Positions 4,761-54,796 of a DNA stretch of 64,000 bases are shown one piece after another (position 1 is the first letter of the stretch; every line of letters starts with the position of its first letter). The notes below the pieces were generated by a model. It was given only the letters and a program-made list of their open reading frames with translations. It was not told the origin of the DNA and searched no databases. Made by a program: the position numbers and the translations under genes. The stretch is from positions 192,030 to 256,029 of the IMG/VR virus record IMGVR_UViG_3300027816_000052; one strand, written 5' to 3'.

Positions 4761-4763
4761 GAT

Positions 4764-7747: not shown

Positions 7748-8665
7748 ATGGAAAATGAAAAAGATGTATTATTAGAGATACTAAGAACTATTTTAGGTAA
7801 AGAAAAGAATTATTATAATCTTAAACACCAAATTACTTTTGACTGTCCTGTTTGTAGTTATGAAATTAAGGGGTTAGAACAAGGTGATGGAAAGGGTAAT
7901 CTTGAAATAAACACTGAAAGACTTATTTATAAATGTTGGTCATGTGGTGATAGTCACGGTACACACGGTCCAGTAGGTAAACTAATTGATTTATGGGGTA
8001 ATAAAAAACAAAAAAAGATTTTTGATTTAATTAGACCTAAAGATGATGAGACAGTAAAGCCAATAATTCAAAAAATTAGGTTACCTGAAGGTTATATTAA
8101 ATTTAAAGATTCCAATCCGATTCTTATAGCACATAAAGAAGCATATAATTATCTAAAAAAGAGAGGTGTTACAGATGATATAATTGAGAAGTTTGATATT
8201 GGGTATACAGTAGATGGGGACTTTAAAAATAGAATAATAATTCCTTCATATGATTCAAATAATAATTTAAATTATTTTATTGCAAGGTCTTGGGTTAAGA
8301 CGAAAATGAAGTATAAAAATCCTACAATACCTAAAGAAACTATAATTTTTAATGAAAGTAGGGTTGATTTTAATAAAGATATTTATCTTTTAGAGGGTGC
8401 TTTCGACTCTATTTTTGTTGATAATAGTATACCTTTATTGGGTAAACATGTTAGTCCGTTACTTTTTGAAAAACTTTATAATGATGCTAAGAAAAATATT
8501 ATTATCGCATTAGACGGGGACGCATTTAATAATGCACAAAAGTTATTTCATGAATTAAATGGGGGTGTTTTATTTGGTAGAGTTAAATTATTAGAATTAC
8601 CAAAAGATAAAGATGTTGCGGATTTAAGGGGACAAATAAATGAATTTGAAATTTTTATAAAGTAA
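7748..8665 (+). CDS. DNA primase (Zn-binding domain + TOPRIM)
   Basis: CPVC...CWSC zinc motif; YLKKRG, RIIIP, LLEGAFD, IIALDGD, KDVAD TOPRIM motifs. Confidence 0.85.
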   Translation: MENEKDVLLEILRTILGKEKNYYNLKHQITFDCPVCSYEIKGLEQGDGKGNLEINTERLIYKCWSCGDSHGTHGPVGKLIDLWGNKKQKKIFDLIRPKDDETVKPIIQKIRLPEGYIKFKDSNPILIAHKEAYNYLKKRGVTDDIIEKFDIGYTVDGDFKNRIIIPSYDSNNNLNYFIARSWVKTKMKYKNPTIPKETIIFNESRVDFNKDIYLLEGAFDSIFVDNSIPLLGKHVSPLLFEKLYNDAKKNIIIALDGDAFNNAQKLFHELNGGVLFGRVKLLELPKDKDVADLRGQINEFEIFIK

Positions 8666-9522
8666 TGATTGATTTAATTACAGTAAGAGAAGAAATAATA
8701 GATATTTTAAAAAATAAGTATGAAAGTCAAAAACTTTCTTTTTTAGAGGAAAATCACATTTATTTTATGAATGATATTGACGGTAATTTAAGAAATGATT
8801 GGCCTTCAGTGTCAAAAGTTCTTAAATATTTTTATGATGAATTTGATGCAGAATCAATTGCTCATAAGAAAAGTAAGGGTGATTTAGCAGTTAAACAAGC
8901 ATTATTAGATGAATGGAGTAAATCGGGTGAATTAGCGGTTAATATGGGTTCTAGGGTTCACTATCTTCTAGAAAAAGAATCGCTTAAAATTTTCAACATT
9001 GAAAAAGAAGTTAGACAACCAACATTTGATTGTGATTTTGACCAAATATTAAAAAGTGATGCTATGATTCAGGGCGGAATTAAATTTCTTAATTTAATGA
9101 AAGAGCGAGGCGCTGTTTTATTAGATACCGAGGTCGTTTTAGGTTCGGCTGAATTAGGATATGTTGGTCAAGCAGACAAAATTTGGCTAATTGAAAATAA
9201 AAATAAAGACGGGTTTGGGGTTATTGTTTCTGACTATAAGAGTAATAAACCAAAAAATTTTATACCAAATAGTTTTACTAAAAAAATGAAATTTCCATTT
9301 ATCTTTTTAGATGATACAGCATTGGGTCATTACTCGGTTCAATTACCACTATACGGTAAACTTTTTCTAAAAATGTTAGAGGGTACAAAATACGAAAATT
9401 TAAAACTCTACGGCTGTATAATAGTACTACTTAAGGACGATTCAGATTTTGAAGAATTTAGAGTCGGTAAAGGTGCTATGGATACCGCATTAACTATGGA
9501 CGTAAAAAAATACCTGAAATAG
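8665..9522 (+). CDS. PD-(D/E)xK exonuclease
   Basis: GSRVH, GYVGQADKIW, VSDYKS, QLPLY motifs. Confidence 0.7.
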   Translation: MIDLITVREEIIDILKNKYESQKLSFLEENHIYFMNDIDGNLRNDWPSVSKVLKYFYDEFDAESIAHKKSKGDLAVKQALLDEWSKSGELAVNMGSRVHYLLEKESLKIFNIEKEVRQPTFDCDFDQILKSDAMIQGGIKFLNLMKERGAVLLDTEVVLGSAELGYVGQADKIWLIENKNKDGFGVIVSDYKSNKPKNFIPNSFTKKMKFPFIFLDDTALGHYSVQLPLYGKLFLKMLEGTKYENLKLYGCIIVLLKDDSDFEEFRVGKGAMDTALTMDVKKYLK

Positions 9523-9572
9523 TTTTTTTTGTTAGAGATTTTTTCATATCTTTGTAGTTCAAAAAATAAATT

Positions 9573-10439
9573 ATGTCAAAAGTATCTGAACTTCAAACAA
9601 AATACGCTAAACAAGTTAGTGCAGCTATTTTCCAAAGTTTCTTACATGCTGATAAAACAGAAACTAAGAAATATTTGGAATTTATGTGTAAACTTTGGTC
9701 GAATAGAGATAAGAACAAACTAACTAGGTCGGCTAAAGTAATTGAACTTGTTAATGATTTTGATAGTTGTTTAAGTTATCTTACAAATAAAGATATTTAC
9801 TCTCCTGAATACACTAATCTTAAAATTCTTCAAGATAGGATTGATGATGCGATGAGTCGCAAATTAGAAAAAGAATTTGAACCCAAAAAACATGGGACAA
9901 AAATTTATGAGACCGAAAATATTTTAATTGTAAGACCGTTAACCCAAGAGGGTTCAGATAAATGGGGGGCAAACACCAAGTGGTGTACTACCGGTAAAAA
10001 TAGCAGGTTTAAAGAATATTTTAGACGAGGCGTTATCATCTATTTAATAGATAAAAAAGCATCAAGAAATAGTGGATATAATAAAATAGCTTTTTATATT
10101 AATTGGAATAACCATTCTGTTTTTACGAATGATATTGAAGTATATAATCAACTTGATTCAAGAATTTATGATAAACATATGTTAAATTCGGGATGGAATA
10201 GACAAGATATTATTACAATTTTTAATATTATTAGAACATATATGTTTAATCTTGAGTTCGTTTTTAAAGCAAAAGAAAATGTGTCAAACACAATCAATAC
10301 ATTAAATAATATTGATATTGATAAATTAATGGAATCTATTCATCTCATTAGTGAGTCAAATGTTGAAGATAGAGATTATGTTTTAGAAATTAAAAATAAC
10401 ATTGATTTCATTACAAATAAATTAAAGGAAATTATTTAA
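9573..10439 (+). CDS. hypothetical protein, GxxTKWC-motif family copy 1
   Basis: PLTQEGSDKWGANTKWCTT motif shared with 11722..12645 and 25866..27854. Confidence 0.6.
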   Translation: MSKVSELQTKYAKQVSAAIFQSFLHADKTETKKYLEFMCKLWSNRDKNKLTRSAKVIELVNDFDSCLSYLTNKDIYSPEYTNLKILQDRIDDAMSRKLEKEFEPKKHGTKIYETENILIVRPLTQEGSDKWGANTKWCTTGKNSRFKEYFRRGVIIYLIDKKASRNSGYNKIAFYINWNNHSVFTNDIEVYNQLDSRIYDKHMLNSGWNRQDIITIFNIIRTYMFNLEFVFKAKENVSNTINTLNNIDIDKLMESIHLISESNVEDRDYVLEIKNNIDFITNKLKEII

Positions 10440-10441
10440 AT

Positions 10442-11221
10442 ATGATAAATAAAATTATTCATTTTAGTGACCTACACATTAGGTTATTTAAGGATCACGA
10501 TTTGTATCGTGAAATTATGTCTGATGCTTTTAAACAGTGGAGAGATATAAAACCAGATAGAATTGTTTTTACTGGTGATTTGGTTCATAGTAAGAATCAA
10601 ATGACACCAGAACTTGTAGAAATGATTCGTTGGGTTTTGACCGAATGTTCAAGTATTTGTAAAACAATTCTAATTCCGGGAAACCATGATTTTCTTGAAA
10701 ACAATATGTCGAGACTTGATGCAATTAGTCCTGTTCTTGACGCACTAAATGATTCAAATATTGTTTATTACAAAACAAGAGGTGTTTATGAAGATGATAA
10801 CATTGATTGGGTTGTATATTCATTGTATGAACATAATATACCTCCGGTAATTGAAAAAAATGATAGACTAAAAATTGGATTATTTCATGGACCAATTGTT
10901 GGATTAAAGACTGATGTTGGTTATGAGTTTGATTCGGGTTTTGATAAGAATGGATTTGATGGGTGCGACCTCGTTTTATGTGGGGATATACACAGGAGGC
11001 AAATTTTTGATATCCCAAATGGAAGAAAAGCATATATGATTGGCTCATGCGCTATGCAGAATTTTGGTGAGAAAATATCCAATCATGGTTATGGGGTTTA
11101 TGATGTAAAACAAGATAAATATACTACTCACGATTTGACAAATAAGAGACCATTTCTTAAATTTAAGATATCGTCAATCGATGATATTGAAAATGGTAAT
11201 GAAATTTTAGTAAATGAATGA
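10442..11221 (+). CDS. SbcD/Mre11-like metallophosphoesterase nuclease (gp47-like)
   Basis: SDLH, GDLVH, GNHD, FHG, GDIH motifs; SbcC-like gene nearby. Confidence 0.85.
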   Translation: MINKIIHFSDLHIRLFKDHDLYREIMSDAFKQWRDIKPDRIVFTGDLVHSKNQMTPELVEMIRWVLTECSSICKTILIPGNHDFLENNMSRLDAISPVLDALNDSNIVYYKTRGVYEDDNIDWVVYSLYEHNIPPVIEKNDRLKIGLFHGPIVGLKTDVGYEFDSGFDKNGFDGCDLVLCGDIHRRQIFDIPNGRKAYMIGSCAMQNFGEKISNHGYGVYDVKQDKYTTHDLTNKRPFLKFKISSIDDIENGNEILVNE

Positions 11222-34918: not shown

Positions 34919-35490
34919 TATTTAACAATTATATATTTTTTTCTATAGTTCGCAACTAATTCATCATTTTTACTTAATGGTGTATTGATAATATCAATTT
35001 CTAATCCAGTCCTAAGATTATCCGGTAAGGATTGAATTGGTGTTCCATTTAACCACAAACTTCCCCCAACACGAAGATTATCCGGTAAGGATTGAATTGG
35101 TGTTCCTCTTAAATCCAACAATCCCTTAACGTCAAGATTATCCGGTAAGGATTGAATTGGTGTTCCTCGTAAATACAAACTTCCCCCAACATGAAGATTA
35201 TCCGGTAAGGATTGAATTGGTGTTCCATTTAACCACAAACTTCCCCCAACTTTAAGATTATCCGGTAAGGATTGAATTTGTGTTTCACTTAAATCCAAAT
35301 GCCCATTAACAACAATCTCATCATATTTGTTATTAAGATGTTTAACAAATCTTTCACCTGATGATGATGTTATAAAAGATGCAAATGCTCCCGGAGAAAA
35401 TGTAAAACTTCTCTTTTCTTCCTCCTGTTCAAGAAGAACCTTTCTAACAATTCTATATAAATCCGATTCTGTTAATTTTATCTTTTTCAT
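34918..35490 (-). CDS. tandem 20-aa repeat (LRR-like) protein with KIKLTESDL N-terminus
   Basis: Five LPDNLxVxGxLxLxGTPIQS repeats; ATG at 35490. Confidence 0.7.
   Translation of the reverse strand: MKKIKLTESDLYRIVRKVLLEQEEEKRSFTFSPGAFASFITSSSGERFVKHLNNKYDEIVVNGHLDLSETQIQSLPDNLKVGGSLWLNGTPIQSLPDNLHVGGSLYLRGTPIQSLPDNLDVKGLLDLRGTPIQSLPDNLRVGGSLWLNGTPIQSLPDNLRTGLEIDIINTPLSKNDELVANYRKKYIIVK
35014..35286. repeat. 60-bp-period coding tandem repeat, 5 copies
   Basis: 33-bp core AAGATTATCCGGTAAGGATTGAATTGGTGTTCC at 35014, 35074, 35134, 35194; degenerate copy at 35254. Confidence 0.9.
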
Positions 35491-44207: not shown

Positions 44208-44335
44208 ACCACAAACCCGCCACTTGCATATACACGCTGTTATAAGCAGGTGCGGTATTATAGCACAGAACTTGATTTGAAAGACGAAACCTTTTTCTTT
44301 TCTTTTTGTGTGGTGGGAAAATAAAATTTAAAATA

Positions 44336-46309
44336 ATGAATAAAGTATTATTACCAAAAGAAGAAATTACACAGAAGTTAGATAGAGATAAACTTACTTT
44401 ATTGAACGCTTCTATCAAAGATTATGTGAACAACTTGTATGAAAATTCAAATGATGAATACATTATACAAGATGGTGAACCATACGCCAATGGAGAATTA
44501 CATTTGGGACATTTTTTAAACAAAACCTTGAAAGATTTTGTTGTAAAATATTACTTAACAAAAGGTAAGAAAGTTAGGGTTTCATTTGGTTGGGACTGTC
44601 ATGGTTTACCCATTGAAAATAAAGCAAAAGAAATGAGTGGTGATTTAATTCAAAATGCTAAATTAGTCGCAACCAAATATTGTGATATTCAAAATAAAAC
44701 TCTTGAACTTTTCGGGATTTATCCAACTGAAGGTAGGTTTAAAACTATGGATATTGATTTTATAGAAAGAGAATTATATATATACCACCAACTACTAAAT
44801 GCGGGTCTAATTCTTAAAAAGAATAAGCCTACTTGGTACTCACCAACATTAAAAACAGTATTGGCTAACTCAGAAATTGAATATAAAAAAATAGAAGATG
44901 AATCTTTGTATTTTCTATTCAACTCTGATAGTTTTAAATTACTTGTTTGGACAACAACAGAATGGACTGTAAACGGAAATCAGGCAGTATGTTTAAGTAA
45001 TAATATAAAATATGTTAAAACTGTTGACAATATTATTTGTAGTGAAAGTTTTGCTATTGAAAATAATTTAGATTATGATTTGTTTGATGTGAGTAATATT
45101 AAGTCATATCATAACCACAATGGAGATTTATGTCCAATTATTTATGATGACTACGTTTCAGATGATAAAACAGGTATAGTACATCTTTGCGGTGGACACG
45201 GTGATGAAGATTATCGAATTTTAATGGATAATAACATAACCCCCAAAAATGTGTGCGATAAAATCGGCTTATTAAAACACATAGAAGATTTTAAAATTGA
45301 TGAAAAGTTTGTATATAAACGTGAAATTTACACACACGATTATCCAATTGATTGGCGTGAAGGGAATAAGGTGTATAAAGTATTAACGGAACAAACGTAT
45401 CTTGATTTTGATTTAAACAAAATAAAGACTTGTTTAAAAGAAATAAAGTTATCATCAAAAGACAGAAATCGTTTATCAACGACAATATTTTCACGCAAAG
45501 ATTGGTGTATTTCAAGACAAAGAAAATGGGGTGTTAAAATACCTAATAGTAATGATATATTGGATGTTTGGTTTGATAGTGGTTCTACATTTATGATGTA
45601 TGATAAACCTGCCGATATATACATTGAAGGTTCAGACCAACACAGAGGGTGGTTTCAAAGTTCGATTATATTAGCATCAATGATTGGTCGAGTACCAACA
45701 AAAAGAATAATAACACACGGATTTATTGTTGATAACACATTAGAAAAACTATCAAAATCAAAAGGTAATGGCGGAAGTTTGGAAAAGCTGTATGAAACAT
45801 ATAACCCTGATGTATTAAGACTATGGGTTTTACTGTCAGATTTTAAAAACGATATTGTCTTTTCGGAAGATTCATTAAAAAACTCTGGTAAACAATATTT
45901 TAAAATAAGAAACTTTCTCCGTTATTTATTTAATAATCTATATATATATGATTATGATGAAACAAAAGTTGATGAAAATATTTTTTTTAAAGTAAAAGAG
46001 TTGGAAAATAAATTTGATTTACTTGTCAATGAATTTGATTTGAATAAAGCAGTAAGGGGTTTTGTTGAATTTATAAACTATTATTCATCTTTGTTGACGG
46101 AGGATATTAAAAATGAATTTTATGAATCTGACACAAATTCCAATATGAGAATTAAATATGAAACAGAGTTTTACTATGTTTTAAAACACTTAAATAAACT
46201 ACTTTTTTCGATTTTACCATTTCTTTCTATGGAAATAAAAAAAGCGTGGGAAGAAAAAAGAAAAGAAAAAGATTTACATGTAGGGACTATATTTGGAAAC
46301 GAGATGTAG
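44336..46309 (+). CDS. ileS: compact isoleucyl-tRNA synthetase (cassette 1)
   Basis: DGEPYANGELHLGH (HIGH), GWDCHGLPIE, WTTT, DWCISRQR, DVWFDSGS, EGSDQHRGWF, KLSKS (KMSKS). Confidence 0.88.
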   Translation: MNKVLLPKEEITQKLDRDKLTLLNASIKDYVNNLYENSNDEYIIQDGEPYANGELHLGHFLNKTLKDFVVKYYLTKGKKVRVSFGWDCHGLPIENKAKEMSGDLIQNAKLVATKYCDIQNKTLELFGIYPTEGRFKTMDIDFIERELYIYHQLLNAGLILKKNKPTWYSPTLKTVLANSEIEYKKIEDESLYFLFNSDSFKLLVWTTTEWTVNGNQAVCLSNNIKYVKTVDNIICSESFAIENNLDYDLFDVSNIKSYHNHNGDLCPIIYDDYVSDDKTGIVHLCGGHGDEDYRILMDNNITPKNVCDKIGLLKHIEDFKIDEKFVYKREIYTHDYPIDWREGNKVYKVLTEQTYLDFDLNKIKTCLKEIKLSSKDRNRLSTTIFSRKDWCISRQRKWGVKIPNSNDILDVWFDSGSTFMMYDKPADIYIEGSDQHRGWFQSSIILASMIGRVPTKRIITHGFIVDNTLEKLSKSKGNGGSLEKLYETYNPDVLRLWVLLSDFKNDIVFSEDSLKNSGKQYFKIRNFLRYLFNNLYIYDYDETKVDENIFFKVKELENKFDLLVNEFDLNKAVRGFVEFINYYSSLLTEDIKNEFYESDTNSNMRIKYETEFYYVLKHLNKLLFSILPFLSMEIKKAWEEKRKEKDLHVGTIFGNEM

Positions 46310-46316
46310 CACTTGC

Positions 46317-46436
46317 TTATAACGGTTGCAAATATAAAACGTTTTAAACTAAACTTAAATTGAAAAACAGTATATAAATATAAACCAACAATAAATTTGG
46401 AACGCTGAAATAAATGTTTTATATTTGTTGTTATAA
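46317..46436 (-). repeat. attC-like hairpin 1
   Basis: CTTATAAC-GGTTG-CAAATATAAAACGTTT ... AAATGTTTTATATTTG-TT-GTTATAA. Confidence 0.8.
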
Positions 46437-46456
46437 ACACGTTAAATTATTTTATT

Positions 46457-46735
46457 ATGAAAACATATAATGTAAAGTATGATGTTGGACAAGAAGTATA
46501 TATACTTTTATCCAAAAAAATATTTAAAAGTAAAATTGAAAAGATTAGAATTGTTCATGGGGTACCTTATATCAAAGGCGAAACAATGGAACAAATGGAT
46601 GGAATTGAAATTGATTACTTGGTTGTAGTTAATGAACAATTCTATCCTTCAGGTGGACATTTATCTAGTTATGATTGGTATAAACAGGATGATATTTTTT
46701 TGGATAAAGATGAACTGTTGCGGAAAATAATTTAA
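46457..46735 (+). CDS. cassette 2 hypothetical protein
   Basis: ORF inside segment 46430..46746 bounded by GTTATAAACA/TGTTTATAAC. Confidence 0.6.
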   Translation: MKTYNVKYDVGQEVYILLSKKIFKSKIEKIRIVHGVPYIKGETMEQMDGIEIDYLVVVNEQFYPSGGHLSSYDWYKQDDIFLDKDELLRKII

Positions 46736-46739
46736 TTGT

Positions 46740-46793
46740 TTATAACGTCTGATGATAAACAATCGTTTTAATGTGTTTTATTTGCTGTTATAA
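46740..46793 (-). repeat. attC-like hairpin 2 (same family as hairpin 10)
   Basis: TATAAC-GTCTGATGATAAACAATCGTTTTAATG...GCT-GTTATAA. Confidence 0.7.
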
Positions 46794-46817
46794 GTATGTA
46801 ATTTACAATTTATACCT

Positions 46818-47063
46818 ATGAAAAAAACGAAAAGAAAAATACATATTGGAAATGACCTATGGTTTTATTGGGTTGGTTCTGGTAGATGGGGTGAGGTAAC
46901 TCATGTAACGATATGTTCACCAGATGAACAATATTATAAAATAGATGCAAGTGATGTTGCAAGTAGTGAAATGTATGTTGGTGCGGAAGGGTCATTTCCA
47001 ACACAAATATTACCGTCAAAAGTTAAAGAATATATTGAAAATAAAATAATAAATAAATTTTAA
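46818..47063 (+). CDS. cassette 3 hypothetical protein
   Basis: ORF inside segment 46787..47078 bounded by GTTATAAGTA/TACTTATAAC. Confidence 0.6.
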   Translation: MKKTKRKIHIGNDLWFYWVGSGRWGEVTHVTICSPDEQYYKIDASDVASSEMYVGAEGSFPTQILPSKVKEYIENKIINKF

Positions 47064-47071
47064 ATTATTAC

Positions 47072-47166
47072 TTATAACGGTTGGGTGTATGAGAAGGTTT
47101 GCTTAGATGAACTTTCAAATTAACCACTGAACTTTATAGCAAACTTTCTTATACACCTTGTTATGT
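47072..47166 (-). repeat. attC-like hairpin 3
   Basis: 20-bp stem GGTGTATGAGAAGGTTTGCT / AGCAAACTTTCTTATACACC between TAAC and GTTA. Confidence 0.85.
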
Positions 47167-47234
47167 GTAGGTGTGGTTAATTAAGGTAGAATGTTAAATA
47201 GTAGAAATGAACAAAAATTTTAAAAGAAAAATAT

Positions 47235-47645
47235 ATGAATTATAAACAAAAAATTACAACTATCAATTATTTTGAAAAGGTGGTTAAAATTTCTCTAACA
47301 AGAGAAGAGTGGAATTCATCTGGAACTTGGGTAGAGTCAATGATGAAAAAAGGTTGTGAAAGACTGAGTAAGGATTGGTTTGAAGATTTACATCACTTAG
47401 TTATGCGACCAATAAGTGACGAAATAAACTTTTCTGGTAAAAACTATACTTATGATGTGGATATAACATTTGATATACCAAGAGAATTACTGAGAATGTT
47501 TGTATATTCAATCGGTCAAATTGCTTATGATTTTGATGTTAAAGGTATAACTTCGGTTACTGCTCAAAATATAGTGGGAAAAATAAACAAACAATTAAAA
47601 GAACAACTACCAAATGATGATAAATGGTTTCATTATGGATTTTGA
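47235..47645 (+). CDS. cassette 4 hypothetical protein
   Basis: ORF inside segment 47160..47710 bounded by GTTATGTGTAGG/CTTACACATAAC. Confidence 0.6.
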   Translation: MNYKQKITTINYFEKVVKISLTREEWNSSGTWVESMMKKGCERLSKDWFEDLHHLVMRPISDEINFSGKNYTYDVDITFDIPRELLRMFVYSIGQIAYDFDVKGITSVTAQNIVGKINKQLKEQLPNDDKWFHYGF

Positions 47646-47703
47646 TTTTTCTTTTAAAATTTTCAACCGAAATGTTGATTAGAACGATGAACGGAACGCT
47701 TAC

Positions 47704-48179
47704 ACATAACGTATATCGGCTAAACGCAGTATTTAAAAACTTTTGCGAGGGAAATAATTAATCAATTAAATAATAATAATTAAAAACAAAAAGTAAAATG
47801 GAAATCAAAACAAAATTTGACGTAAACAATTTGGTGAAAAGAAAATTCGACACCAATTCAAAGAACCAGATGAGTGCTTTGGAAGTAATGGAAGTGATTG
47901 CACAAACTTGCTATGCAGGAACGCAGGTATTTTATTTGTGCAAACATGTAATTGCTCAAAAGGAATTTGTAGAAAAGTATTCTGAAAAAGGAGAATTTAC
48001 TTGGGTGATTGCTCACAGTATTTCACAAGAAGAAAATCAGGCAGGATGGAGAAAATACCGTGAAGATGAATTGATAGAAGCACCAAAAGAAGTGATTGAC
48101 ATTATACTTGGTAATTCTTAATTGTTCAATTGTGCGGTGGGAAAGTTTTTAAATATTGTCGTTTTAGCCGTTGTTATGC
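47704..48179 (-). repeat. giant attC-like hairpin 4 with a gene in its loop
   Basis: Arms CGGCTAAACGCAGTATTTAAAAACTTT (~47717) and AAAGTTTTTAAATATTGTCGTTTTAGCCG (~48142) about 400 bp apart. Confidence 0.75.
47798..48121 (+). CDS. hypothetical protein located inside hairpin 4
   Basis: ORF track; A-rich leader; lies between the two stem arms. Confidence 0.6.
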   Translation: MEIKTKFDVNNLVKRKFDTNSKNQMSALEVMEVIAQTCYAGTQVFYLCKHVIAQKEFVEKYSEKGEFTWVIAHSISQEENQAGWRKYREDELIEAPKEVIDIILGNS

Positions 48180-48244
48180 GAAGGTGTGGCAACTCCAAAA
48201 TTTCAAATTATAGACAAAACTTTCTTGCCACACTTTTGCATAAC
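48173..48244. repeat. empty 72-bp cassette segment 5
   Basis: GTTATGCGAAGGTGTGGCAA ... TTGCCACACTTTTGCATAAC with no ORF. Confidence 0.8.
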
Positions 48245-48322
48245 GGTTGTAAATATGAGAAGTAAATTTTACCTATAAAAATTAGATAAATCAAAATTTA
48301 TTTCTTATATTTGTTGTTATAA
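48238..48322 (-). repeat. attC-like hairpin 5
   Basis: TAAC-GGTTG-TAAATATGAGAAGTAAATTTT ... AAAATTTATTTCTTATATTTG-TT-GTTA. Confidence 0.8.
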
Positions 48323-48353
48323 GTATGTAAAACAAACTAAATAATAATTAAAT

Positions 48354-48584
48354 ATGAAAATTGAAGGTCAAATTACGCTAGATGGTATATTATATACACT
48401 GTTTATTTTATTCTGTTTATTTTTAACAATAGGTAGTTCTATTAGTGGGTGGTGGTATTTATCACACTTTGGATTCAGTGTAAAACAATTTTTGGTAAAT
48501 ATTTTAGTTTCGTCTTCAACTTTATTTATGATCTGGATGATTTTCACTAAAATATTTATTATAAAAATAAACAGAATAAAGTAG
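48354..48584 (+). CDS. cassette 6 two-TM membrane protein
   Basis: Two hydrophobic helices; segment 48316..48604 with a ~23-bp terminal IR. Confidence 0.6.
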   Translation: MKIEGQITLDGILYTLFILFCLFLTIGSSISGWWYLSHFGFSVKQFLVNILVSSSTLFMIWMIFTKIFIIKINRIK

Positions 48585-48597
48585 TTTGTTTTATTAC

Positions 48598-48728
48598 TTA
48601 TAACGGTTGAGTATAACCGAAGGTGGGGATTAGAAGTGCCGAACCCTGACTTACCTACAAAAGTAAATTAGAAGCACAATATCTGAATGTTGGAACTACA
48701 CCCCACTTTTGGTTATACTTTGTTAGGT
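48598..48728 (-). repeat. attC-like hairpin 6
   Basis: AGTATAACCGAAGGTGGGG / CCCCACTTTTGGTTATACT stem. Confidence 0.85.
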
Positions 48729-48748
48729 GTATGTAAATTTTACGGATT

Positions 48749-48937
48749 ATGAAAGATATACAACTGTTAATTGATATGAAAGTTTCTTTAGGTAGGGAAA
48801 CATTATTATTTCAGATACTTGGTAAGTATGGTGATAAAATACCAATGGAACTTCAAGAAGAACTACGAAAATTGGCAGAAGAAGAAAGAAACTTTGGTGA
48901 AATGAAGAAACGAACTTTGAAGGGTGTGTTGGAGTAA
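48749..48937 (+). CDS. cassette 7 hypothetical protein
   Basis: Segment 48722..48954 bounded by GTTAGGTGTA/TACACCTAAC. Confidence 0.6.
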   Translation: MKDIQLLIDMKVSLGRETLLFQILGKYGDKIPMELQEELRKLAEEERNFGEMKKRTLKGVLE

Positions 48938-48947
48938 AATTTATTAC

Positions 48948-49040
48948 ACCTAACGGTTGGGTGTATGAAACGTAGCCACGCACAATACTTAATATAAACC
49001 ACAGACCTTAATTGGCTATGTTTTATACACGATGTTAGCA
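48948..49040 (-). repeat. attC-like hairpin 7
   Basis: GTGTATGAAACGTAGCCA / TGGCTATGTTTTATACAC stem. Confidence 0.85.
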
Positions 49041-49146
49041 GTAGTACGGATTTAAACTACAAATGCTCATTCGGAGAACTGAACCTTTTTCTTTTCTTTT
49101 TTGTGGGTTGGACAAAATAAATTTGAAAAATTTAAAAATAAATAAT

Positions 49147-49380
49147 ATGAAATTAGAAACAATTGTAAAAGTTACACCAGATGGTGGAGTTGAAATTCCT
49201 TCTGATATGAAAGTTGGAACTGGATTGATGAATATGGTAAAAGAATTACGTGATAATGAATGGAGAACATTTGAACATCACGATAATTGGATTAAAAACG
49301 AACATTATCCAAATCCAACATTTGAACAACAATTTGATACAGGTAATGCTTATAAAGAAATGTTAAAAACTAAAATTTAA
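49147..49380 (+). CDS. cassette 8 gene a, hypothetical
   Basis: ORF 49063..49380; ATG (MKLETIV) after an A-rich leader preferred. Confidence 0.5.
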   Translation: MKLETIVKVTPDGGVEIPSDMKVGTGLMNMVKELRDNEWRTFEHHDNWIKNEHYPNPTFEQQFDTGNAYKEMLKTKI

Positions 49381-49384
49381 AACT

Positions 49385-49984
49385 ATGATGAAAATTGAAG
49401 CAAAAAAAGACGGTAAAGGAAACATTGTAATATCGGAAGATTCCTTTGAAATGATACTGGCTTGTTTAGATAATCAAAAATTTGTTGGTGAACAGCCACA
49501 AAATGGTGATTCGCTTTCGGTAGGCGAAGACAACTATTGGAAAGGACAAGAAGATATTCAAAACACTATTGACCATTATAATAGAGAATGTAGAAAAATA
49601 TTACATCAAAAATATGTTTTAAGAACAGAATCTGATGGTTATTTTCTTGCTAAAAAATATGAACATCAAACAGAAGATACTGAATGGACTGGTGAAGATG
49701 TTGGATTAGTGTATGAACTATTCAAAGATACAAGAATAATTTATAATGAAACAAGAGATTTATTACCATTAGATGGTAGTGAAGAAATTAAGGAAGGAAG
49801 TACTCCAATTGGTAAAACAAAAGATGGGTGGATTGCAGTTGAACAAGAATCAAGACCTTGGTTAATTGAAAGAGCATTGGGATATGATGGTGATTATTTA
49901 ACAATTTCTGAAGATGGCAGTAAGAATAGACCTTGGAAACAAGATGAAATTCGAAAAATTATAAACATATTTAATAATAAATAA
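49385..49984 (+). CDS. cassette 8 gene b, hypothetical
   Basis: ORF track; three-gene cassette 49034..50406. Confidence 0.55.
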   Translation: MMKIEAKKDGKGNIVISEDSFEMILACLDNQKFVGEQPQNGDSLSVGEDNYWKGQEDIQNTIDHYNRECRKILHQKYVLRTESDGYFLAKKYEHQTEDTEWTGEDVGLVYELFKDTRIIYNETRDLLPLDGSEEIKEGSTPIGKTKDGWIAVEQESRPWLIERALGYDGDYLTISEDGSKNRPWKQDEIRKIINIFNNK

Positions 49985-49985
49985 A

Positions 49986-50393
49986 ATGGGAATATTTGAT
50001 TGTTTAATAGATAAAGACAATGGAAAACCAAAATCTGATATGGAATATATTTACAGATTAGATATGGTTTGGATACCTAACAAACTTGAAAGTAAACCAA
50101 TTAAAATTGGAACGATAATGAATAATGTTATTCAACGAGATAATGGCAGTTATGAATTTACTTGTAAAGAAACTGGTGAAAGATTACAAGCAACTTATTC
50201 TTGGGCTTTGGCTGAAAACACACCAGAAAATGTTGAAAGAATAAAAATATATGATGATGAATATTTAAAATTCAAAGAATACGAAAGAAAAATAAATTCT
50301 TTGAGAAATAATATTATTACTCTTAAAGAGCGTGGAGAAAAAAGAAAAGAAAAAGATATTGCAGATGAAACTCAAATCGGAGAACAAATGTAG
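49986..50393 (+). CDS. cassette 8 gene c, hypothetical
   Basis: ORF track; C-terminus EKRKEKD is encoded by the cassette right arm. Confidence 0.55.
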   Translation: MGIFDCLIDKDNGKPKSDMEYIYRLDMVWIPNKLESKPIKIGTIMNNVIQRDNGSYEFTCKETGERLQATYSWALAENTPENVERIKIYDDEYLKFKEYERKINSLRNNIITLKERGEKRKEKDIADETQIGEQM

Positions 50394-50399
50394 TATTAC

Positions 50400-50458
50400 A
50401 CATAACGGTTCGGCGGGTTGCCGTTGTGCATTCAATAACGGCAACCCGACTGTTATGC
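50400..50458 (-). repeat. attC-like hairpin 8
   Basis: Perfect 12-bp stem CGGGTTGCCGTT/AACGGCAACCCG. Confidence 0.85.
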
Positions 50459-50498
50459 GGGGTCATTCTTTTTCACTCGGTAAAAAGCAAAAGGTACA

Positions 50499-50801
50499 AT
50501 GGCAAAAAGGAAGTTAGGCCCATCGAGCGGCAAGTGCTCCAAGTGCGGAGGTCACATCAGCATCAATCCACCAAGACCGTGCCGCCGCTGCTCAGGCGAA
50601 AAGCCTCAGGCGAGCTCGGAAAAGAAAGAGCGCGTGTTCACCGAGAGCGAGGTGAAGGCGATGGTGCGAGAGATTCTCGCAGAACAGGAACGACTGCATA
50701 TAAGCGATGGATCCGGAGGACACGATATTGTGTGGGCGGTCGGGATCGGAGAGGTCGAGGCGGTGTTTAAAGCGCACGGCATTGTTCTCGATCCCGCATA
50801 A
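50499..50801 (+). CDS. cassette 9 GC-rich protein with CxxC...CxxC zinc ribbon
   Basis: CSKCGG...CRRC; stop TAA inside the terminal GCATAAC; markedly higher GC. Confidence 0.65.
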   Translation: MAKRKLGPSSGKCSKCGGHISINPPRPCRRCSGEKPQASSEKKERVFTESEVKAMVREILAEQERLHISDGSGGHDIVWAVGIGEVEAVFKAHGIVLDPA

Positions 50802-50925
50802 CGGTTGACGGTATGAAAAGTTGGGGATTAAAAGATATAAACTTTCGCACCGATACAATGATAATTAATAGTACAAACCTTCGGGAACGCACACACGCCC
50901 CAATTTTTTATACCGTGTGTTATGC
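50796..50925 (-). repeat. attC-like hairpin 9
   Basis: ACGGTATGAAAAGTTGGGG / CCCCAATTTTTTATACCGT stem. Confidence 0.8.
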
Positions 50926-51369
50926 CCCGTTTTTATCCAATTTTTTATGTTACAAGACGAATTAGCATTACAATATAAATACAAAAAACTTCCATCAGAA
51001 TTATCTGACAAGGTAAGAAACCAATATTTGTCTGAAATACCAAAATGTTTGAATATCAATGGTGATTCTGAATTTGAGTTAAAAACAGCAAACGGTACAA
51101 TAATTTCAAAAGGATATGAAAGAATTGTAATTGGAGATTATGGAGCGTTTATTGAATTTAACAGAAATCAAGTTATTGACGAAAATATTTGTATTCAAAA
51201 GGGGCAAGAATATAGAATTAACGATGAAAAATATAGTAAGAATGTGAAATATTTTTGGTTGACTGCAAAAGATTCATCGTGTATAAAGATATATTTACAA
51301 CAGAAAACGGTATCATACGCAGATTATAAACCAAATATGTATTACGTGTCTCCATTTGAGGTTTTTTAA
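50917..51369 (+). CDS. cassette 10 hypothetical protein
   Basis: ORF track; true start may be the internal ATG (MLQDEL); segment 50919..51381. Confidence 0.6.
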   Translation: MLCPVFIQFFMLQDELALQYKYKKLPSELSDKVRNQYLSEIPKCLNINGDSEFELKTANGTIISKGYERIVIGDYGAFIEFNRNQVIDENICIQKGQEYRINDEKYSKNVKYFWLTAKDSSCIKIYLQQKTVSYADYKPNMYYVSPFEVF

Positions 51370-51374
51370 ATGGG

Positions 51375-51428
51375 GAATAACGTCCGATGATAAACAATCG
51401 TTTTAATGTTGTTTATCATTTGTTATGT
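51375..51428 (-). repeat. attC-like hairpin 10
   Basis: Perfect 11-bp stem ATGATAAACAA/TTGTTTATCAT. Confidence 0.85.
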
Positions 51429-51507
51429 GTAGGTGTGGATTATTAAGGTGGAATGTTTAATCGGAGAACTGAACAAAAATTTTAAAAGAAAAATTAATAT
51501 ATAGATT

Positions 51508-51732
51508 ATGGGAAACATAGTTAAAAAATTTGAAAACTTTAAAGATGGGTTATACGTCACATGTAAAAACGCACCAGAAGATAATTACCAACTTCATAAT
51601 AAAAAGGATTATTTGGTTATTAAATATGATAACCAACCGTATGGTGTTGGACGAGTAACTATATTTAACCCTTCAAGTAGAAAGGAAGAAACATATCCTA
51701 AAACTATGTTTAGTGAACCATTTAACAAATAA
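51508..51732 (+). CDS. cassette 11 hypothetical protein
   Basis: Segment 51422..51797; flanks nearly identical to cassette 4. Confidence 0.55.
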   Translation: MGNIVKKFENFKDGLYVTCKNAPEDNYQLHNKKDYLVIKYDNQPYGVGRVTIFNPSSRKEETYPKTMFSEPFNK

Positions 51733-51790
51733 TTTTTCTTTTAAAATTTTAAACATAGATGTTGATTAGAACGATGGGTGGAACACTTAC

Positions 51791-51923
51791 ACATAACGTT
51801 TCGCAGCTTGGCGAGGTGCGGGATTTACAGCACTAAAGACGATTAGAATTACAAATTTTTAAATAAAAAACAATATGTCAAACGAAGTACAAAACCCCGC
51901 ATCTTGCCAAACTGCTGTTATAT
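51791..51923 (-). repeat. attC-like hairpin 11 (contains the start of the next ORF)
   Basis: GCAGCTTGGCGAGGTGCGGG / CCCGCATCTTGCCAAACTGC stem. Confidence 0.85.
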
Positions 51924-52156
51924 GCCGCCTTTTTGATTTGGGAAGGAAAGGGTTAACATGGGATTGGTCAAAATTGGAACTGAAAAAACAATACTTTATC
52001 AGTCGTGAAGATGTTTTGAATATGAATATGCTTTGGCAACTTGCACAAGGTGGTATAACTGAACAAGCACAATCTTTGAATGCAGAAGTATTGATTTGGG
52101 AAGATGTCATAAAAAACGGATGGTACTTGTTGCTGAGACCGCAAGGTGGCATATAA
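51875..52156 (+). CDS. cassette 12 protein starting inside hairpin 11
   Basis: MSNEVQNPASCQTAVIC reads through the right arm and GTT core; stop lies in the terminal ATATAAC. Confidence 0.65.
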   Translation: MSNEVQNPASCQTAVICRLFDLGRKGLTWDWSKLELKKQYFISREDVLNMNMLWQLAQGGITEQAQSLNAEVLIWEDVIKNGWYLLLRPQGGI

Positions 52157-52284
52157 CGGTTTGCGTATTGCTGACGTTGCCAATTTGAAACACAAATGTT
52201 GAATTAAAAACAAAAAAATAAATATGAAAATCAGAGTTGAAGTTAAAGACGAAGCTGGCAATGTTCAGCAATACGTTGTTAGGC
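52151..52284 (-). repeat. attC-like hairpin 12 (contains the start of the next ORF)
   Basis: CGTATTGCTGACGTTGCCA / TGGCAATGTTCAGCAATACG stem. Confidence 0.85.
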
Positions 52285-52442
52285 GCAGTTACTTGGTCAA
52301 ATTTGTTGACCCGAAGAAAGAGTATCCTGTTACCTACACAATTAAACACGATGGCACAAGAGTAAATGAACCTGCAATGCTCAAAGGCGAAGATTTAACC
52401 GAAAATCAAATTGCACAACTTTTCTCGAAGGGTTTGTTGTAA
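52224..52442 (+). CDS. cassette 13 protein starting inside hairpin 12
   Basis: MKIRVEVKDEAGNVQQYVVRRS reads through the arm and core. Confidence 0.65.
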   Translation: MKIRVEVKDEAGNVQQYVVRRSYLVKFVDPKKEYPVTYTIKHDGTRVNEPAMLKGEDLTENQIAQLFSKGLL

Positions 52443-52446
52443 TTGC

Positions 52447-52541
52447 GCCTAACGATTGGGTGTATATGTAGTTTTTTATTTGGAAATGTCAAAACTTATT
52501 CGTACCTTTGTAAAAAAAATTACATATACACCTTGTTATGT
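52447..52541 (-). repeat. attC-like hairpin 13 (promoter in loop)
   Basis: GGTGTATATGTAGTTTTT / AAAAATTACATATACACC stem. Confidence 0.85.
52479..52510 (+). promoter_or_regulatory. Bacteroidota sigma70-type promoter inside hairpin 13
   Basis: TTTG-N20-TACCTTTG matches the -33/-7 consensus. Confidence 0.7.
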
Positions 52542-52572
52542 ATAGTTTATTCACAAATTAAAATAAAAGTTT

Positions 52573-52779
52573 ATGAAACAACCAAAAATTAAAATAACCG
52601 ACATTCACGGTAAAGACTGGGGTATTAAAAAAGTAAAAACACTTCATTGGAATTTGGACGGAAAATTAAACACAATTCAAGTTGATTTTTCTGGAACTAT
52701 GGATATGTATGATTTAGATGATGAAGGCGTTTTTACTAATCCACATGGTAATATGAAAGGCGTTATCATTTGGGAATAA
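52573..52779 (+). CDS. cassette 14 hypothetical protein
   Basis: Segment 52535..52791 bounded by GTTATGTATAGTTTATT/AATAAATTATACATAAC. Confidence 0.6.
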   Translation: MKQPKIKITDIHGKDWGIKKVKTLHWNLDGKLNTIQVDFSGTMDMYDLDDEGVFTNPHGNMKGVIIWE

Positions 52780-52784
52780 ATTAT

Positions 52785-52837
52785 ACATAACTAGTATATA
52801 TAAGTAAGTATAATCTAACCACTTAAAAATAAAGGAC
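52785..52837 (-). other. attI-like terminal site
   Basis: Last TACATAAC core has no hairpin partner; reads GTTATGT on the minus strand pointing into the array; 46 bp from the integrase start. Confidence 0.6.
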
Positions 52838-53638
52838 TTGAATAATAAAATTATTAAGATTTGTGAAGAAAAGTTTATATATTTAAACTATTCACCAAGA
52901 ACAAAAGATAATTATCTTTCACATATAAAAAATTTCTTAAATCACATTGGTAGTAAACAAGTAATACATTGTAATGCTCAAGATTTTCAATCCTATTTAG
53001 ATAATTATAAATTCACTTCAACAGCACAACAAAACCAAATCATTAACGCAATAAGATTTCTCTACAAATTTGGTCTTAATAAAAAATATGATAAAATATC
53101 GTTTAAAAGACCTAAATCTGAGAAGAAACTACCAAAAGTAATTGATTCAAATTCAATCATTGATAAATTAAATAAGATTGATAATCTCAAACACAAAGCA
53201 ATTCTCACCTTAACTTTTTCAGTTGGTCTACGAGTCTCAGAAATAATTAATCTTAAAATAGAGGATATTGATTCCAAGCGAATGTTAATCCACATTAAGA
53301 ACGCAAAAGGAAGAAAAGATAGAGTTGTTCCATTATCTCAAAATGTATTAAGACTATTAAGAACTTATTATAAAAATTATATCCCAAAGGAATATCTCTT
53401 CAATGGACAAAACAGTACTAAATATTCAATAGGTAGTTGTCAGAAAATATACAAAAAATATATTGAATCTGATGGACATATACACACACTTAGACACAGT
53501 TTTGCAACATCCTTATTAGAAAATGGAACAGATTTAAGAATTATTCAAAAAATTCTTGGTCATTCAAATGTTAAAACCACAGAAATATACACACACGTTT
53601 CAAATCAAATTTTGAACAAAATTAATTTGCCAGTTTGA
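52838..53638 (+). CDS. tyrosine recombinase/integrase (SAM-like N-domain + catalytic domain)
   Basis: YSPRT..NY, QNQIINAIRFLY, GLRVSE, KGRKDR, HTLRHSFAT, LGH, TTEIYTH. Confidence 0.93.
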   Translation: MNNKIIKICEEKFIYLNYSPRTKDNYLSHIKNFLNHIGSKQVIHCNAQDFQSYLDNYKFTSTAQQNQIINAIRFLYKFGLNKKYDKISFKRPKSEKKLPKVIDSNSIIDKLNKIDNLKHKAILTLTFSVGLRVSEIINLKIEDIDSKRMLIHIKNAKGRKDRVVPLSQNVLRLLRTYYKNYIPKEYLFNGQNSTKYSIGSCQKIYKKYIESDGHIHTLRHSFATSLLENGTDLRIIQKILGHSNVKTTEIYTHVSNQILNKINLPV

Positions 53639-53657
53639 AAAGTTTTAGTTATCTTTG
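53622..53657 (+). promoter_or_regulatory. Bacteroidota-type promoter
   Basis: TTTG-N20-TATCTTTG upstream of 53673..53954 (coordinates approximate). Confidence 0.55.
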
Positions 53658-53672
53658 TCAAAAATAACAAAA

Positions 53673-53954
53673 ATGAAAAAAGAAGTTTTTGAAATTATCA
53701 TCTGGAATGATACATTTGGAAAAGTGGTTGATGAAAGATTTGTTGATGAAACACAATTTTCGATTTTTTTGAAAGCGATTAAGGGTTGCTTGGATACAAC
53801 ACAAGATTTTAGTTATTTTAATGGAAAAAACTTTTTAATCCACATTCCTTTTGCAGTTTTGAAAAATAGCGTTATCTTTACCAAAGAAAATGAAATTGGT
53901 GTAAGTGAAATCATTAAATCAAAAGCTGAAGCTCTAACAACTAAAACAAAATAA
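53673..53954 (+). CDS. hypothetical protein
   Basis: ORF 53655..53954; ATG MKKEVF. Confidence 0.5.
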   Translation: MKKEVFEIIIWNDTFGKVVDERFVDETQFSIFLKAIKGCLDTTQDFSYFNGKNFLIHIPFAVLKNSVIFTKENEIGVSEIIKSKAEALTTKTK

Positions 53955-54097
53955 TAAAATGGGAAAACTTTTCAAAATCATTCTTGGTGTTATTTTGGTA
54001 TACATTGGCGGAAAAATGGTTTACAACAATGTAAAAGGTAAAAAAGATGAAGAATTTAATTTTAATGATTTTAAAGACTTGAAAGCAATTAAAGATA

Positions 54098-54355
54098 TTG
54101 AATTTTAAAAAAATGATAGAAAAAATTTTAGAGATATATGATGATGCTAGCTTTATGAAAGCTGACGGATTTGATAATGCAATAATCGGTATTGATGAGG
54201 TTGATATGCGATTAATATATTCGGTATCAAAATGTATTGACATTCTGAAAAAAGATGGTATGAATTATGAAGAAGCAAGAGAGTTTTTTGATTTTAATGT
54301 GAGCGGTTCTTATGTTGGTGAAAAAACACCAATATGGTGTTATGATGATTTTTAA
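54098..54355 (+). CDS. conserved phage-type hypothetical protein
   Basis: ADGFDNAIIG...EEAREFFDFNVSGSYVGEKTP. Confidence 0.6.
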   Translation: MNFKKMIEKILEIYDDASFMKADGFDNAIIGIDEVDMRLIYSVSKCIDILKKDGMNYEEAREFFDFNVSGSYVGEKTPIWCYDDF

Positions 54356-54413
54356 TTTCTTGGTTTTTTAAACCAAGTGGTGGAGCGACCTGCAAGCGTT
54401 TGGTCCCAAATAT

Positions 54414-54447
54414 AAATGGTGATAGAAATATCACCATTTTATTTTTT
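54414..54447 (+). terminator. rho-independent terminator
   Basis: AAATGGTGATA-GAAA-TATCACCATTT followed by a T-run. Confidence 0.7.
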
Positions 54448-54478
54448 TGTTATATTTATATATAAAACACTTCAAAAA

Positions 54479-54796
54479 ATGGCAAAATTCATTCTTACCG
54501 AAAAACAAATGGCGGAAGTTCTTCAGCATATTGAGAAAACAAAAAAACAAGTTAATGAAGATAAGGACGGTTCTTATATGGCAAAACAACAATTATTTAC
54601 AATTGCAACATTAGCATATAAAATGTGGGAGCAATTGGGTGATGATGAACAACTTGATGATTGGATGGAATCAAAGATAGCACAAGCTGAACAATCCGTT
54701 GTTGCTGTTGTTAAAGCATATATGTATGATGAGGTTGAAGATAAAATGAAGGGAATGGATAAGTTGGACCATAATGATTTAATTATTGGGAATTGA
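54479..54796 (+). CDS. putative virion-internal protein (ILTEKQM N-terminus)
   Basis: MAKFILTEKQM...VNED; MAKQQL...WMESKIAQA module; TATATTTAT upstream. Confidence 0.55.
   Translation: MAKFILTEKQMAEVLQHIEKTKKQVNEDKDGSYMAKQQLFTIATLAYKMWEQLGDDEQLDDWMESKIAQAEQSVVAVVKAYMYDEVEDKMKGMDKLDHNDLIIGN

Follow-up and report, generated by a model that had tools for sequence, protein, structure and literature searches.

Integron integrases (IntI) carry a specific insertion that is held to be what lets a tyrosine recombinase recognize folded attC DNA, and the question raised by the locus described here is whether a compact recombinase that lacks this segment could nevertheless be the cassette integrase of a hairpin array. 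The locus lies in the last 64 kb (the window, i.e., the whole stretch of 64,000 nucleotides that was analyzed) of a single linear viral record of 256,029 bp, IMGVR_UViG_3300027816_000052, with a GC content of 30% and a CheckV completeness of about 85%, which is found in freshwater metagenomes. A preliminary description, made from the sequence alone, had proposed that a distinct recombinase clade may process attC-like hairpins without the I2 helix, and that such systems would be missed or called CALIN.

The gene in question is the following:

52838-53638, + strand: compact tyrosine recombinase (266 aa, TTG start), the putative cassette integrase, without the IntI-specific insertion.

The protein matches the Pfam Phage_integrase domain (E 1.9e-37) and the SAM-like N-terminal domain. 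Its catalytic residues R132, K157 (or K160), H216, R219, H242 and Y251 are all present, and they are invariant in an alignment of 35 sequences. The preliminary description was therefore correct as to the complete R-K-H-R-H-Y set and, with a slight difference in count, as to the short distance between YLFNG and HTLRH, which start at residues 186 and 216 respectively and leave 25 residues between them rather than about 27. The absence of the insertion is supported by several layers of evidence. Against VchIntIA (PDB 2a3v) the alignment breaks, query 17-174 pairing with chain 17-177 and query 209-257 with chain 260-308, so that about 48 residues of IntI have no counterpart. Likewise, the integron integrase profile TIGR02249 matches only over its positions 3-204 and 256-313, leaving positions about 205-255 unmatched. 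Furthermore, the AlphaFold model (pLDDT 87) shows an ordinary two-domain simple recombinase with no extra helix in that region, for which Foldseek ranks XerA (5hxy) and VchIntIA (2a3v, TM 0.75 on the query) as the best matches. Notably, the protein falls below the curated cut-offs of every named family: XerA (NF040815) with 195.4 bits against 220, XerC with 161 against 335, XerD with 159 against 330, and integron integrase (TIGR02249) with 161 against 265.

The hairpin sites (TAACG...TGTTA) to which the preliminary description alluded are real. Since they are 44-128 nt long, a search for the short-gap pattern TAACG-N5-35-TGTTA sits at chance level, with 4 matches against 4.9 expected. In contrast, a scan for TAAC...GTTA pairs with complementary inner arms, which is our own heuristic, puts 10 of its 13 genome-wide hits inside a 6.2-kb stretch of the 256-kb genome, next to the integrase (binomial P about 2e-14). 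Three more sites were read from the sequence by eye: a degenerate short one, a short one just below the scan threshold, and one whose R and L boxes pair across 470 nt, beyond the distance limit of the scan. Altogether, 13 attC-like imperfect hairpins, of the form ATAAC-G-(GTT bulge)-stem-loop-stem-T-GTTAT, lie upstream of the integrase gene and co-oriented with it. They separate a run of small ORFs, all on the + strand, that begins directly after the stop codon of a class I aminoacyl-tRNA synthetase gene (44306-46309). The elements of the array are:

46320-52791, + strand: cassette array (6.5 kb), from the first hairpin to the attI-like TAAC.
46320-46433, + strand: attC-like hairpin 1 (114 nt, TAAC..GTTA).
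46743-46790, + strand: attC-like hairpin 2 (48 nt, short class, degenerate stem), a paralogue of the site at 51378-51425.
47075-47163, + strand: attC-like hairpin 3 (89 nt).
47707-48176, + strand: split or long site, with R and L boxes pairing across 470 nt and ORF 47798-48121 in the "loop".
48241-48319, + strand: attC-like hairpin (79 nt); the preceding 65-nt interval, 48177-48240, is an ORF-less cassette.
48601-48725, + strand: attC-like hairpin (125 nt).
48951-49037, + strand: attC-like hairpin (87 nt).
50403-50455, + strand: attC-like hairpin (53 nt) that opens the high-GC cassette.
50403-50802, + strand: foreign cassette, made of hairpin, 5' leader and ORF 50499-50801, bounded by AAC|G on both sides; the ORF region has about 60% GC.
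50799-50922, + strand: attC-like hairpin (124 nt).
51378-51425, + strand: attC-like hairpin (48 nt, short class).
51794-51920, + strand: attC-like hairpin (127 nt); the called ORF 51875-52156 begins inside its loop.
52154-52281, + strand: attC-like hairpin (128 nt); ORF 52224-52442 begins inside its loop.
52450-52538, + strand: attC-like hairpin (89 nt), the last complete site, followed by the last cassette ORF, 52573-52779.

Is this arrangement a local oddity or a conserved module? The protein has thousands of metagenomic relatives, the top 120 of which are 76-98% identical and 262-300 aa long, on contigs of up to 566 kb. In 80 IMG/VR loci with integrases 55-100% identical, the same scan finds 269 sites in 477 kb upstream of the integrase and 9 in 650 kb downstream, i.e., 5.6 against 0.14 per 10 kb, and 49 of the 55 loci with at least 1.5 kb of upstream sequence have a site within 1.5 kb. 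As the flanking genes are mostly unrelated between loci, this linkage is not inherited synteny. Most chromosomal homologs in Bacteroidota at 40-50% identity have no array, whereas the few cellular-genome contigs with homologs of at least 52% identity and sequence upstream of the integrase (loci L083, L084 and L089) do have arrays.

Among 248 non-identical sites, which are 34-151 nt long and fall into two length classes, 80-90 and 118-128 nt, the consensus is ATTnnnnATAAC-G-GTT(g)...(c)TTATA(t)-N5-GTTAT(aa). In 240 of 248 sites a G follows TAAC and a T precedes GTTA, giving a G.T wobble on the ORF-sense strand and an A.C mismatch on the other. Interestingly, the ORF-sense strand folds more stably in 238 of 248 sites (Wilcoxon P 1.8e-40) and holds 734 G.T pairs against 180 on the other strand. 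This is indirect evidence of selection on one folded single strand, although the favored strand is also the mRNA sense strand, so that the G.T (G.U) bias could reflect RNA folding. The fold places three unpaired bases (GTT) on the 5' arm right after AAC-G, and the 3' arm carries an inverted repeat, TTATAc-N5-GTTATaa, which in the folded stem would yield two inverted boxes (R and L) about 5 bp apart, the architecture of a tyrosine-recombinase core site.

Several observations indicate that cassettes are the units of exchange. The 10 nt after each GTTA match the reverse complement of the 10 nt before the next site's TAAC at 7.0 of 10 positions on average, while against the same site or a random site the figure is 3.6 (192 pairs); this is the extended R'/R'' pairing known for integron cassettes (Bouvier et al., 2009, PMC2727003). 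Moreover, segments shared at high identity between arrays of different phages begin at (A)TAACG and end at the next TAACG. Two of the related loci, L030 and L053, share 315 nt at 100% identity, though their integrases are only 60% identical. The high-GC cassette of the window recurs in 52%-GC contigs (L317-L320): identity starts exactly at AAC|GGTTCGG, the hairpin is 100% identical, the leader and most of the ORF are conserved, and identity stops exactly at ATAAC|G, whereas the flanks are unrelated. Those contigs carry further TAACG...TGTTA hairpins. A cassette is therefore a hairpin plus the ORF downstream of it, with the crossover in the 5' AAC|G box, at a resolution given by the shared 4-6 nt and not by the bond itself. 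The alternative arrangement, with the crossover in the 3' GTTA box and the hairpin downstream of its ORF as in canonical cassettes, was rejected, since both the shared cassettes and the junction beside the integrase gene place the boundary at the 5' TAAC|G box.

This junction corresponds to the following element:

52780-52810, + strand: attI-like site, made of a variable cassette end plus TAAC (52788-52791) followed by | TAGTATATATAAG.

In the window the array ends in this site, TAAC|TA(T/G)NATATATA, 47 nt before the integrase start. In essentially every locus with upstream sequence (about 70 of 70), a box (T)AAC followed by TAT-N-ATATATA, at 52788-52804 in the window, lies 40-106 nt before the integrase start. 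Loci L043, L044 and L046 are identical from TAAC rightwards and unrelated to its left, and hence the last cassette joins a fixed, integrase-proximal half-site at the same core where hairpins recombine.

Taken together, these data lead us to regard the locus, with good though not full confidence, as an integron-like gene-capture platform carried by a large (at least 256 kb) freshwater phage, with the 266-aa recombinase as its cassette integrase. A Bacteroidota host is likely but inferred, as homologs in cellular genomes are overwhelmingly from this phylum and the nearest integrases in isolated phages are those of Cellulophaga phage Ingeline (41%) and Polaribacter phage Freya (36%). The ORF-sense strand of each site would fold into an imperfect hairpin mimicking a double-stranded core site, with an R box (TTATAAC paired with GTTATAA), a conserved G.T wobble next to it, a 3-nt bulge on the 5' arm, about 5 bp, and then an L box (roughly TATAC paired with GTATG). 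The integrase is inferred to bind R and L, to cleave in (T)AA|C-G of the 5' box and to exchange that single strand with either another folded site or the double-stranded attI-like site (TAAC|TATNATATATA), which would excise cassettes as circles and insert them next to the integrase. That this protein is the catalyst, that the substrate is single-stranded DNA, and the exact cleavage bond are all inferred, there being no direct evidence of catalysis. Nevertheless, no other integrase and no canonical IntI was found in the 256-kb genome, within the limits of a record that is only about 85% complete. The proposal of the preliminary description is thus well supported by comparative evidence, the profile comparisons, the phylogeny and the survey of neighborhoods that it called for having come out in its favor.

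The comparison with classical integrons (IntI, attI and attC cassette arrays, such as VchIntIA/VCR and IntI1/attCaadA7) is instructive. There, cleavage occurs in AAC of one box, the next base is usually G, R pairing extends to 9-11 nt, the extrahelical bases lie on the R''-L'' arm, and the bottom strand is the substrate (Bouvier et al., 2009, PMC2727003). If the ORF-sense strand is read as the "bottom" strand, the array on the 5' side of the integrase gene, the crossover in the integrase-distal box and the AAC-G strand being the integrase sense strand all fit, and a Shewanella integron shows the same geometry. One-ORF cassettes, imperfect palindromes of variable length with AAC/GTT cores, preferential folding of one strand, and a cargo of small, mostly unknown accessory genes are also shared. 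Three points do not fit. The integrase has no I2/intI_Cterm insertion, a segment reported as essential for canonical integron function (Smyshlyaev et al., 2021, PMC8138268); the unpaired bases form a 3-nt bulge on the arm that is cleaved instead of extrahelical bases on the opposite arm; and the cassette ORFs lie on the recombining strand and point towards the integrase (180 of 194 cassettes have their longest ORF on the integrase strand), co-directional with the rest of the phage genes, so that a Pc-type promoter cannot drive them. In the reverse-orientation integrons of Bacteroidota, which occur in the presumed host phylum and whose sites have AAC/GTT cores, the full-length IntI (with insertion) precedes an array that lies downstream of its 3' end, with the opposite strand signature (TAACA...CGTTA) on the integrase strand.

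As for the protein itself, archaeal and bacterial Xer recombinases are the best HMM and PDB sequence matches (XerA: NF040815 at 195 bits; 4a8e at 131 bits), with the same length and two-domain fold and no insertion. However, it is encoded by a phage next to a cassette array rather than acting at a chromosomal dif site. In a quick IQ-TREE search on 106 sequences, with the insertion columns dropped, XerC/D of E. coli and Bacteroidota split from everything else with SH-aLRT 100, and the array-linked clade (support 92) is sister to the Ingeline/Freya integrases (91; 36-41% identity). Canonical IntI (Shewanella plus nine Bacteroidota) forms a long-stemmed clade (100), nested with weak support among compact Bacteroidota homologs and not with the phage clade. 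Sampling and rooting are limited: no XerA sequence was in the tree, and a plasmid IntI1 reference, a truncated ORF, was left out. The protein is thus IntI-related in the broad sense, resembling the "integron-like subgroup" of Smyshlyaev et al. in which the insertion is "not fully conserved" (PMC8138268), but it is not a member of IntI. In Ingeline and in Freya_10 the integrase follows a run of small co-oriented ORFs, and the Freya isolates differ in length just upstream of the integrase, yet no TAAC...GTTA hairpins are present in those regions.

Among the alternatives, none of which can be excluded, the one that survives best, though we consider it unlikely, is that the hairpins are ordinary attC sites (a CALIN) serviced by a canonical, I2-bearing IntI of the host, the compact recombinase being a mere neighbor engaged in something else, such as lysogenic integration or resolution of phage genome multimers. 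Indeed, canonical IntI occurs in 90 of 301 sampled Bacteroidota genomes and IntI1 can recombine phage-borne attC sites (Qi et al., 2023, PMC9892861), so a host enzyme could contribute. Furthermore, the relatives in Ingeline and Freya are annotated as integrases and lack such hairpins, and Cury et al. (2016, 10.1101/030866) concluded that recombinases lacking intI_Cterm near attC sites "are not IntI". Nevertheless, this view does not explain the strict position and orientation of the arrays relative to this gene in non-syntenic genomes, nor the conserved recombination junction 40-106 nt upstream of its start codon, and the unpaired bases are on the arm opposite to that required by IntI.

More doubtful is the possibility that the integrase recombines double-stranded sites (Xer/dif-like or pdif-module-like), the long palindromes being incidental or acting as cruciforms. 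In its favor, the inverted repeat of the 3' arm alone looks like a classical core site, the attI-like site is presumably double-stranded, and the protein resembles XerA in sequence and fold. However, double-strand recombination gives no selection for strand-specific stability or for the conserved G.T (otherwise A.C) asymmetry, nor for stems whose sequences vary while their pairing is kept. Finally, that the hairpins are RNA-level or regulatory elements (terminators, processing or stabilizing stem-loops), with mosaicism arising from short-homology recombination at the conserved boxes, seems very unlikely, for although the stable strand is the transcribed one, G.U pairs are good RNA pairs and a fifth of the sites (52 of 248, too few for a general promoter in the 3' arm) carry a Bacteroidota-type TAnnTTTG motif, the junctions share only 4-6 nt between otherwise unrelated flanks, the complementarity between cassette ends has no RNA rationale, the linkage to a tyrosine recombinase and to a double-stranded attI-like site is unexplained, and no Rfam family matches in 45500-54500.

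What is already known is that clusters of attC-type hairpins occur in virulent phages, including a Polaribacter phage, with orphan DNA methyltransferases as cargo: Qi et al. reported CALINs in 17 phage genomes without linking them to any integrase (PMC9892861), and the one metagenomic Myoviridae record of this type that we examined (MW202573) has no homolog of the present protein. What appears to be new is the link between a specific, insertion-less recombinase clade and the arrays, of which no description was found in the literature that we searched. Detection tools use the insertion to define an integron, and the published rule of IntegronFinder (10.1101/030866) would not call this protein IntI. 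If the link is functional, there would be a second solution to hairpin recognition, current surveys would undercount integron-like platforms, some CALINs would have an unrecognized integrase, the shuffling of small accessory and counter-defense genes by large phages across distant lineages would be explained, and a compact recombinase-hairpin pair would be at hand as a possible structure-specific recombination tool. Going further, we think it somewhat more likely than not that a widespread lineage of phage-borne integrons uses an I2-less recombinase on folded single-stranded hairpins, in which case hairpin-cassette recombination would not require the IntI insertion, either predating it or having arisen twice, and these platforms would circulate counter-defense genes among phages with very different genomes, mirroring the bacterial integrons that store anti-phage defense cassettes.

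With regard to the cargo, nine of the window's own cassette ORFs have no Pfam or PHROG match. Notably, among the 20 largest cassette ORFs in related arrays stand out six orphan DNA methyltransferases, a Tad6 Thoeris inhibitor (E 4.6e-41), an RNA ligase, an Rv2179c-like exoribonuclease and a phosphatase, which points to a store of counter-defense and accessory genes.

In one site of the array (window 47707-48176), the R and L boxes lie 470 nt apart and a whole ORF (47798-48121) occupies the "loop", whereas in two others (51794-51920 and 52154-52281) the downstream ORF appears to start inside the hairpin loop and to run through the 3′ arm; these could be functional sites, fused cassettes or miscalled starts. 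Interestingly, two cassettes share 5′ and 3′ ends of about 75 nt (47158-47232 versus 51420-51494, 91% identical, and 47645-47721 versus 51732-51808, 84% identical) but contain different ORFs, of 136 aa and 74 aa, the ends behaving as a conserved frame around exchangeable coding sequence.

A module of the form (A/C)(T/G)GTAGCAYTTG-nnn-ATAAC was also found to precede many 5′ boxes, the attI-like site and the left edge of the window's array (46300-46323), where its TAG is the stop codon of the synthetase gene, as well as occurring in many loci (e.g., L008, L015, L036, L044, L046, L048, and L055). It could be the original left half of the attI site, an accessory binding site, or a common cassette end. 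The synthetase in question (44306-46309) is a 667-aa class I aminoacyl-tRNA synthetase (tRNA-synt_1, E 1.1e-65), which is encoded by the phage and forms the left border of the array; no tRNA genes are present in the window.

Among the related arrays, one viral locus (L062) has, in addition to the upstream array, a second array of five hairpins located 8-10 kb downstream of the integrase (7829-10490 relative to the integrase start). The cassette cargo of related arrays includes a Tad6 Thoeris inhibitor and six orphan DNA methyltransferases of three families (loci and coordinates L020:8229-8861, L023:8430-9323, L039:5187-6029, L063:8850-9590, L073:7078-7848, L046:1831-2550, and L020:7438-8007), which suggests that the arrays collect counter-defence genes.

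In Bacteroidota genome contigs, two chromosomal homologs that are 42-44% identical and also devoid of the insertion have arrays of canonical-looking attC sites (e.g., GCCTAAC...GTTAGGT) 2.5 kb downstream of their 3′ end (L105, 6771-9094, and L123, 10637-16351). There, the strand signature is the opposite one, i.e., the geometry seen for full-length IntI in Bacteroidota. Neither genome had a full-length IntI hit. In turn, full-length TIGR02249 integron integrases, above the cut-off and carrying the insertion, were found in 90 of 301 sampled genomes of the phylum, and in three of the twelve loci retrieved for the best hits (L177-L188), attC-like sites lay downstream of intI, in reverse orientation.

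The ten isolates of Polaribacter phage Freya (Freya_1 to Freya_10, records MT732463-MT732472; loci L200, L201) differ in genome length, from 43,978 to 48,920 bp, and the integrase start lies at record coordinate 83 in Freya_1 and at 4180 in Freya_10, where it is preceded by ten small co-oriented ORFs. There are no TAAC...GTTA hairpins, but the intergenic regions hold other stem-loops, and a motif ATTGTTGCTAACACCC-n-ATAAC is shared with phage Ingeline just before the integrase. This may be a culturable relative of the system.

Elsewhere in the window, two adjacent copies of a segment about 2.34 kb long (2455-7000; repeat families D2, D3, D5-D11, and D13), which are 70-82% identical, probably correspond to tandem paralogous genes, and four to five tandem copies of a 60-nt unit, 83-88% identical (family D1), are found at 35014-35322.
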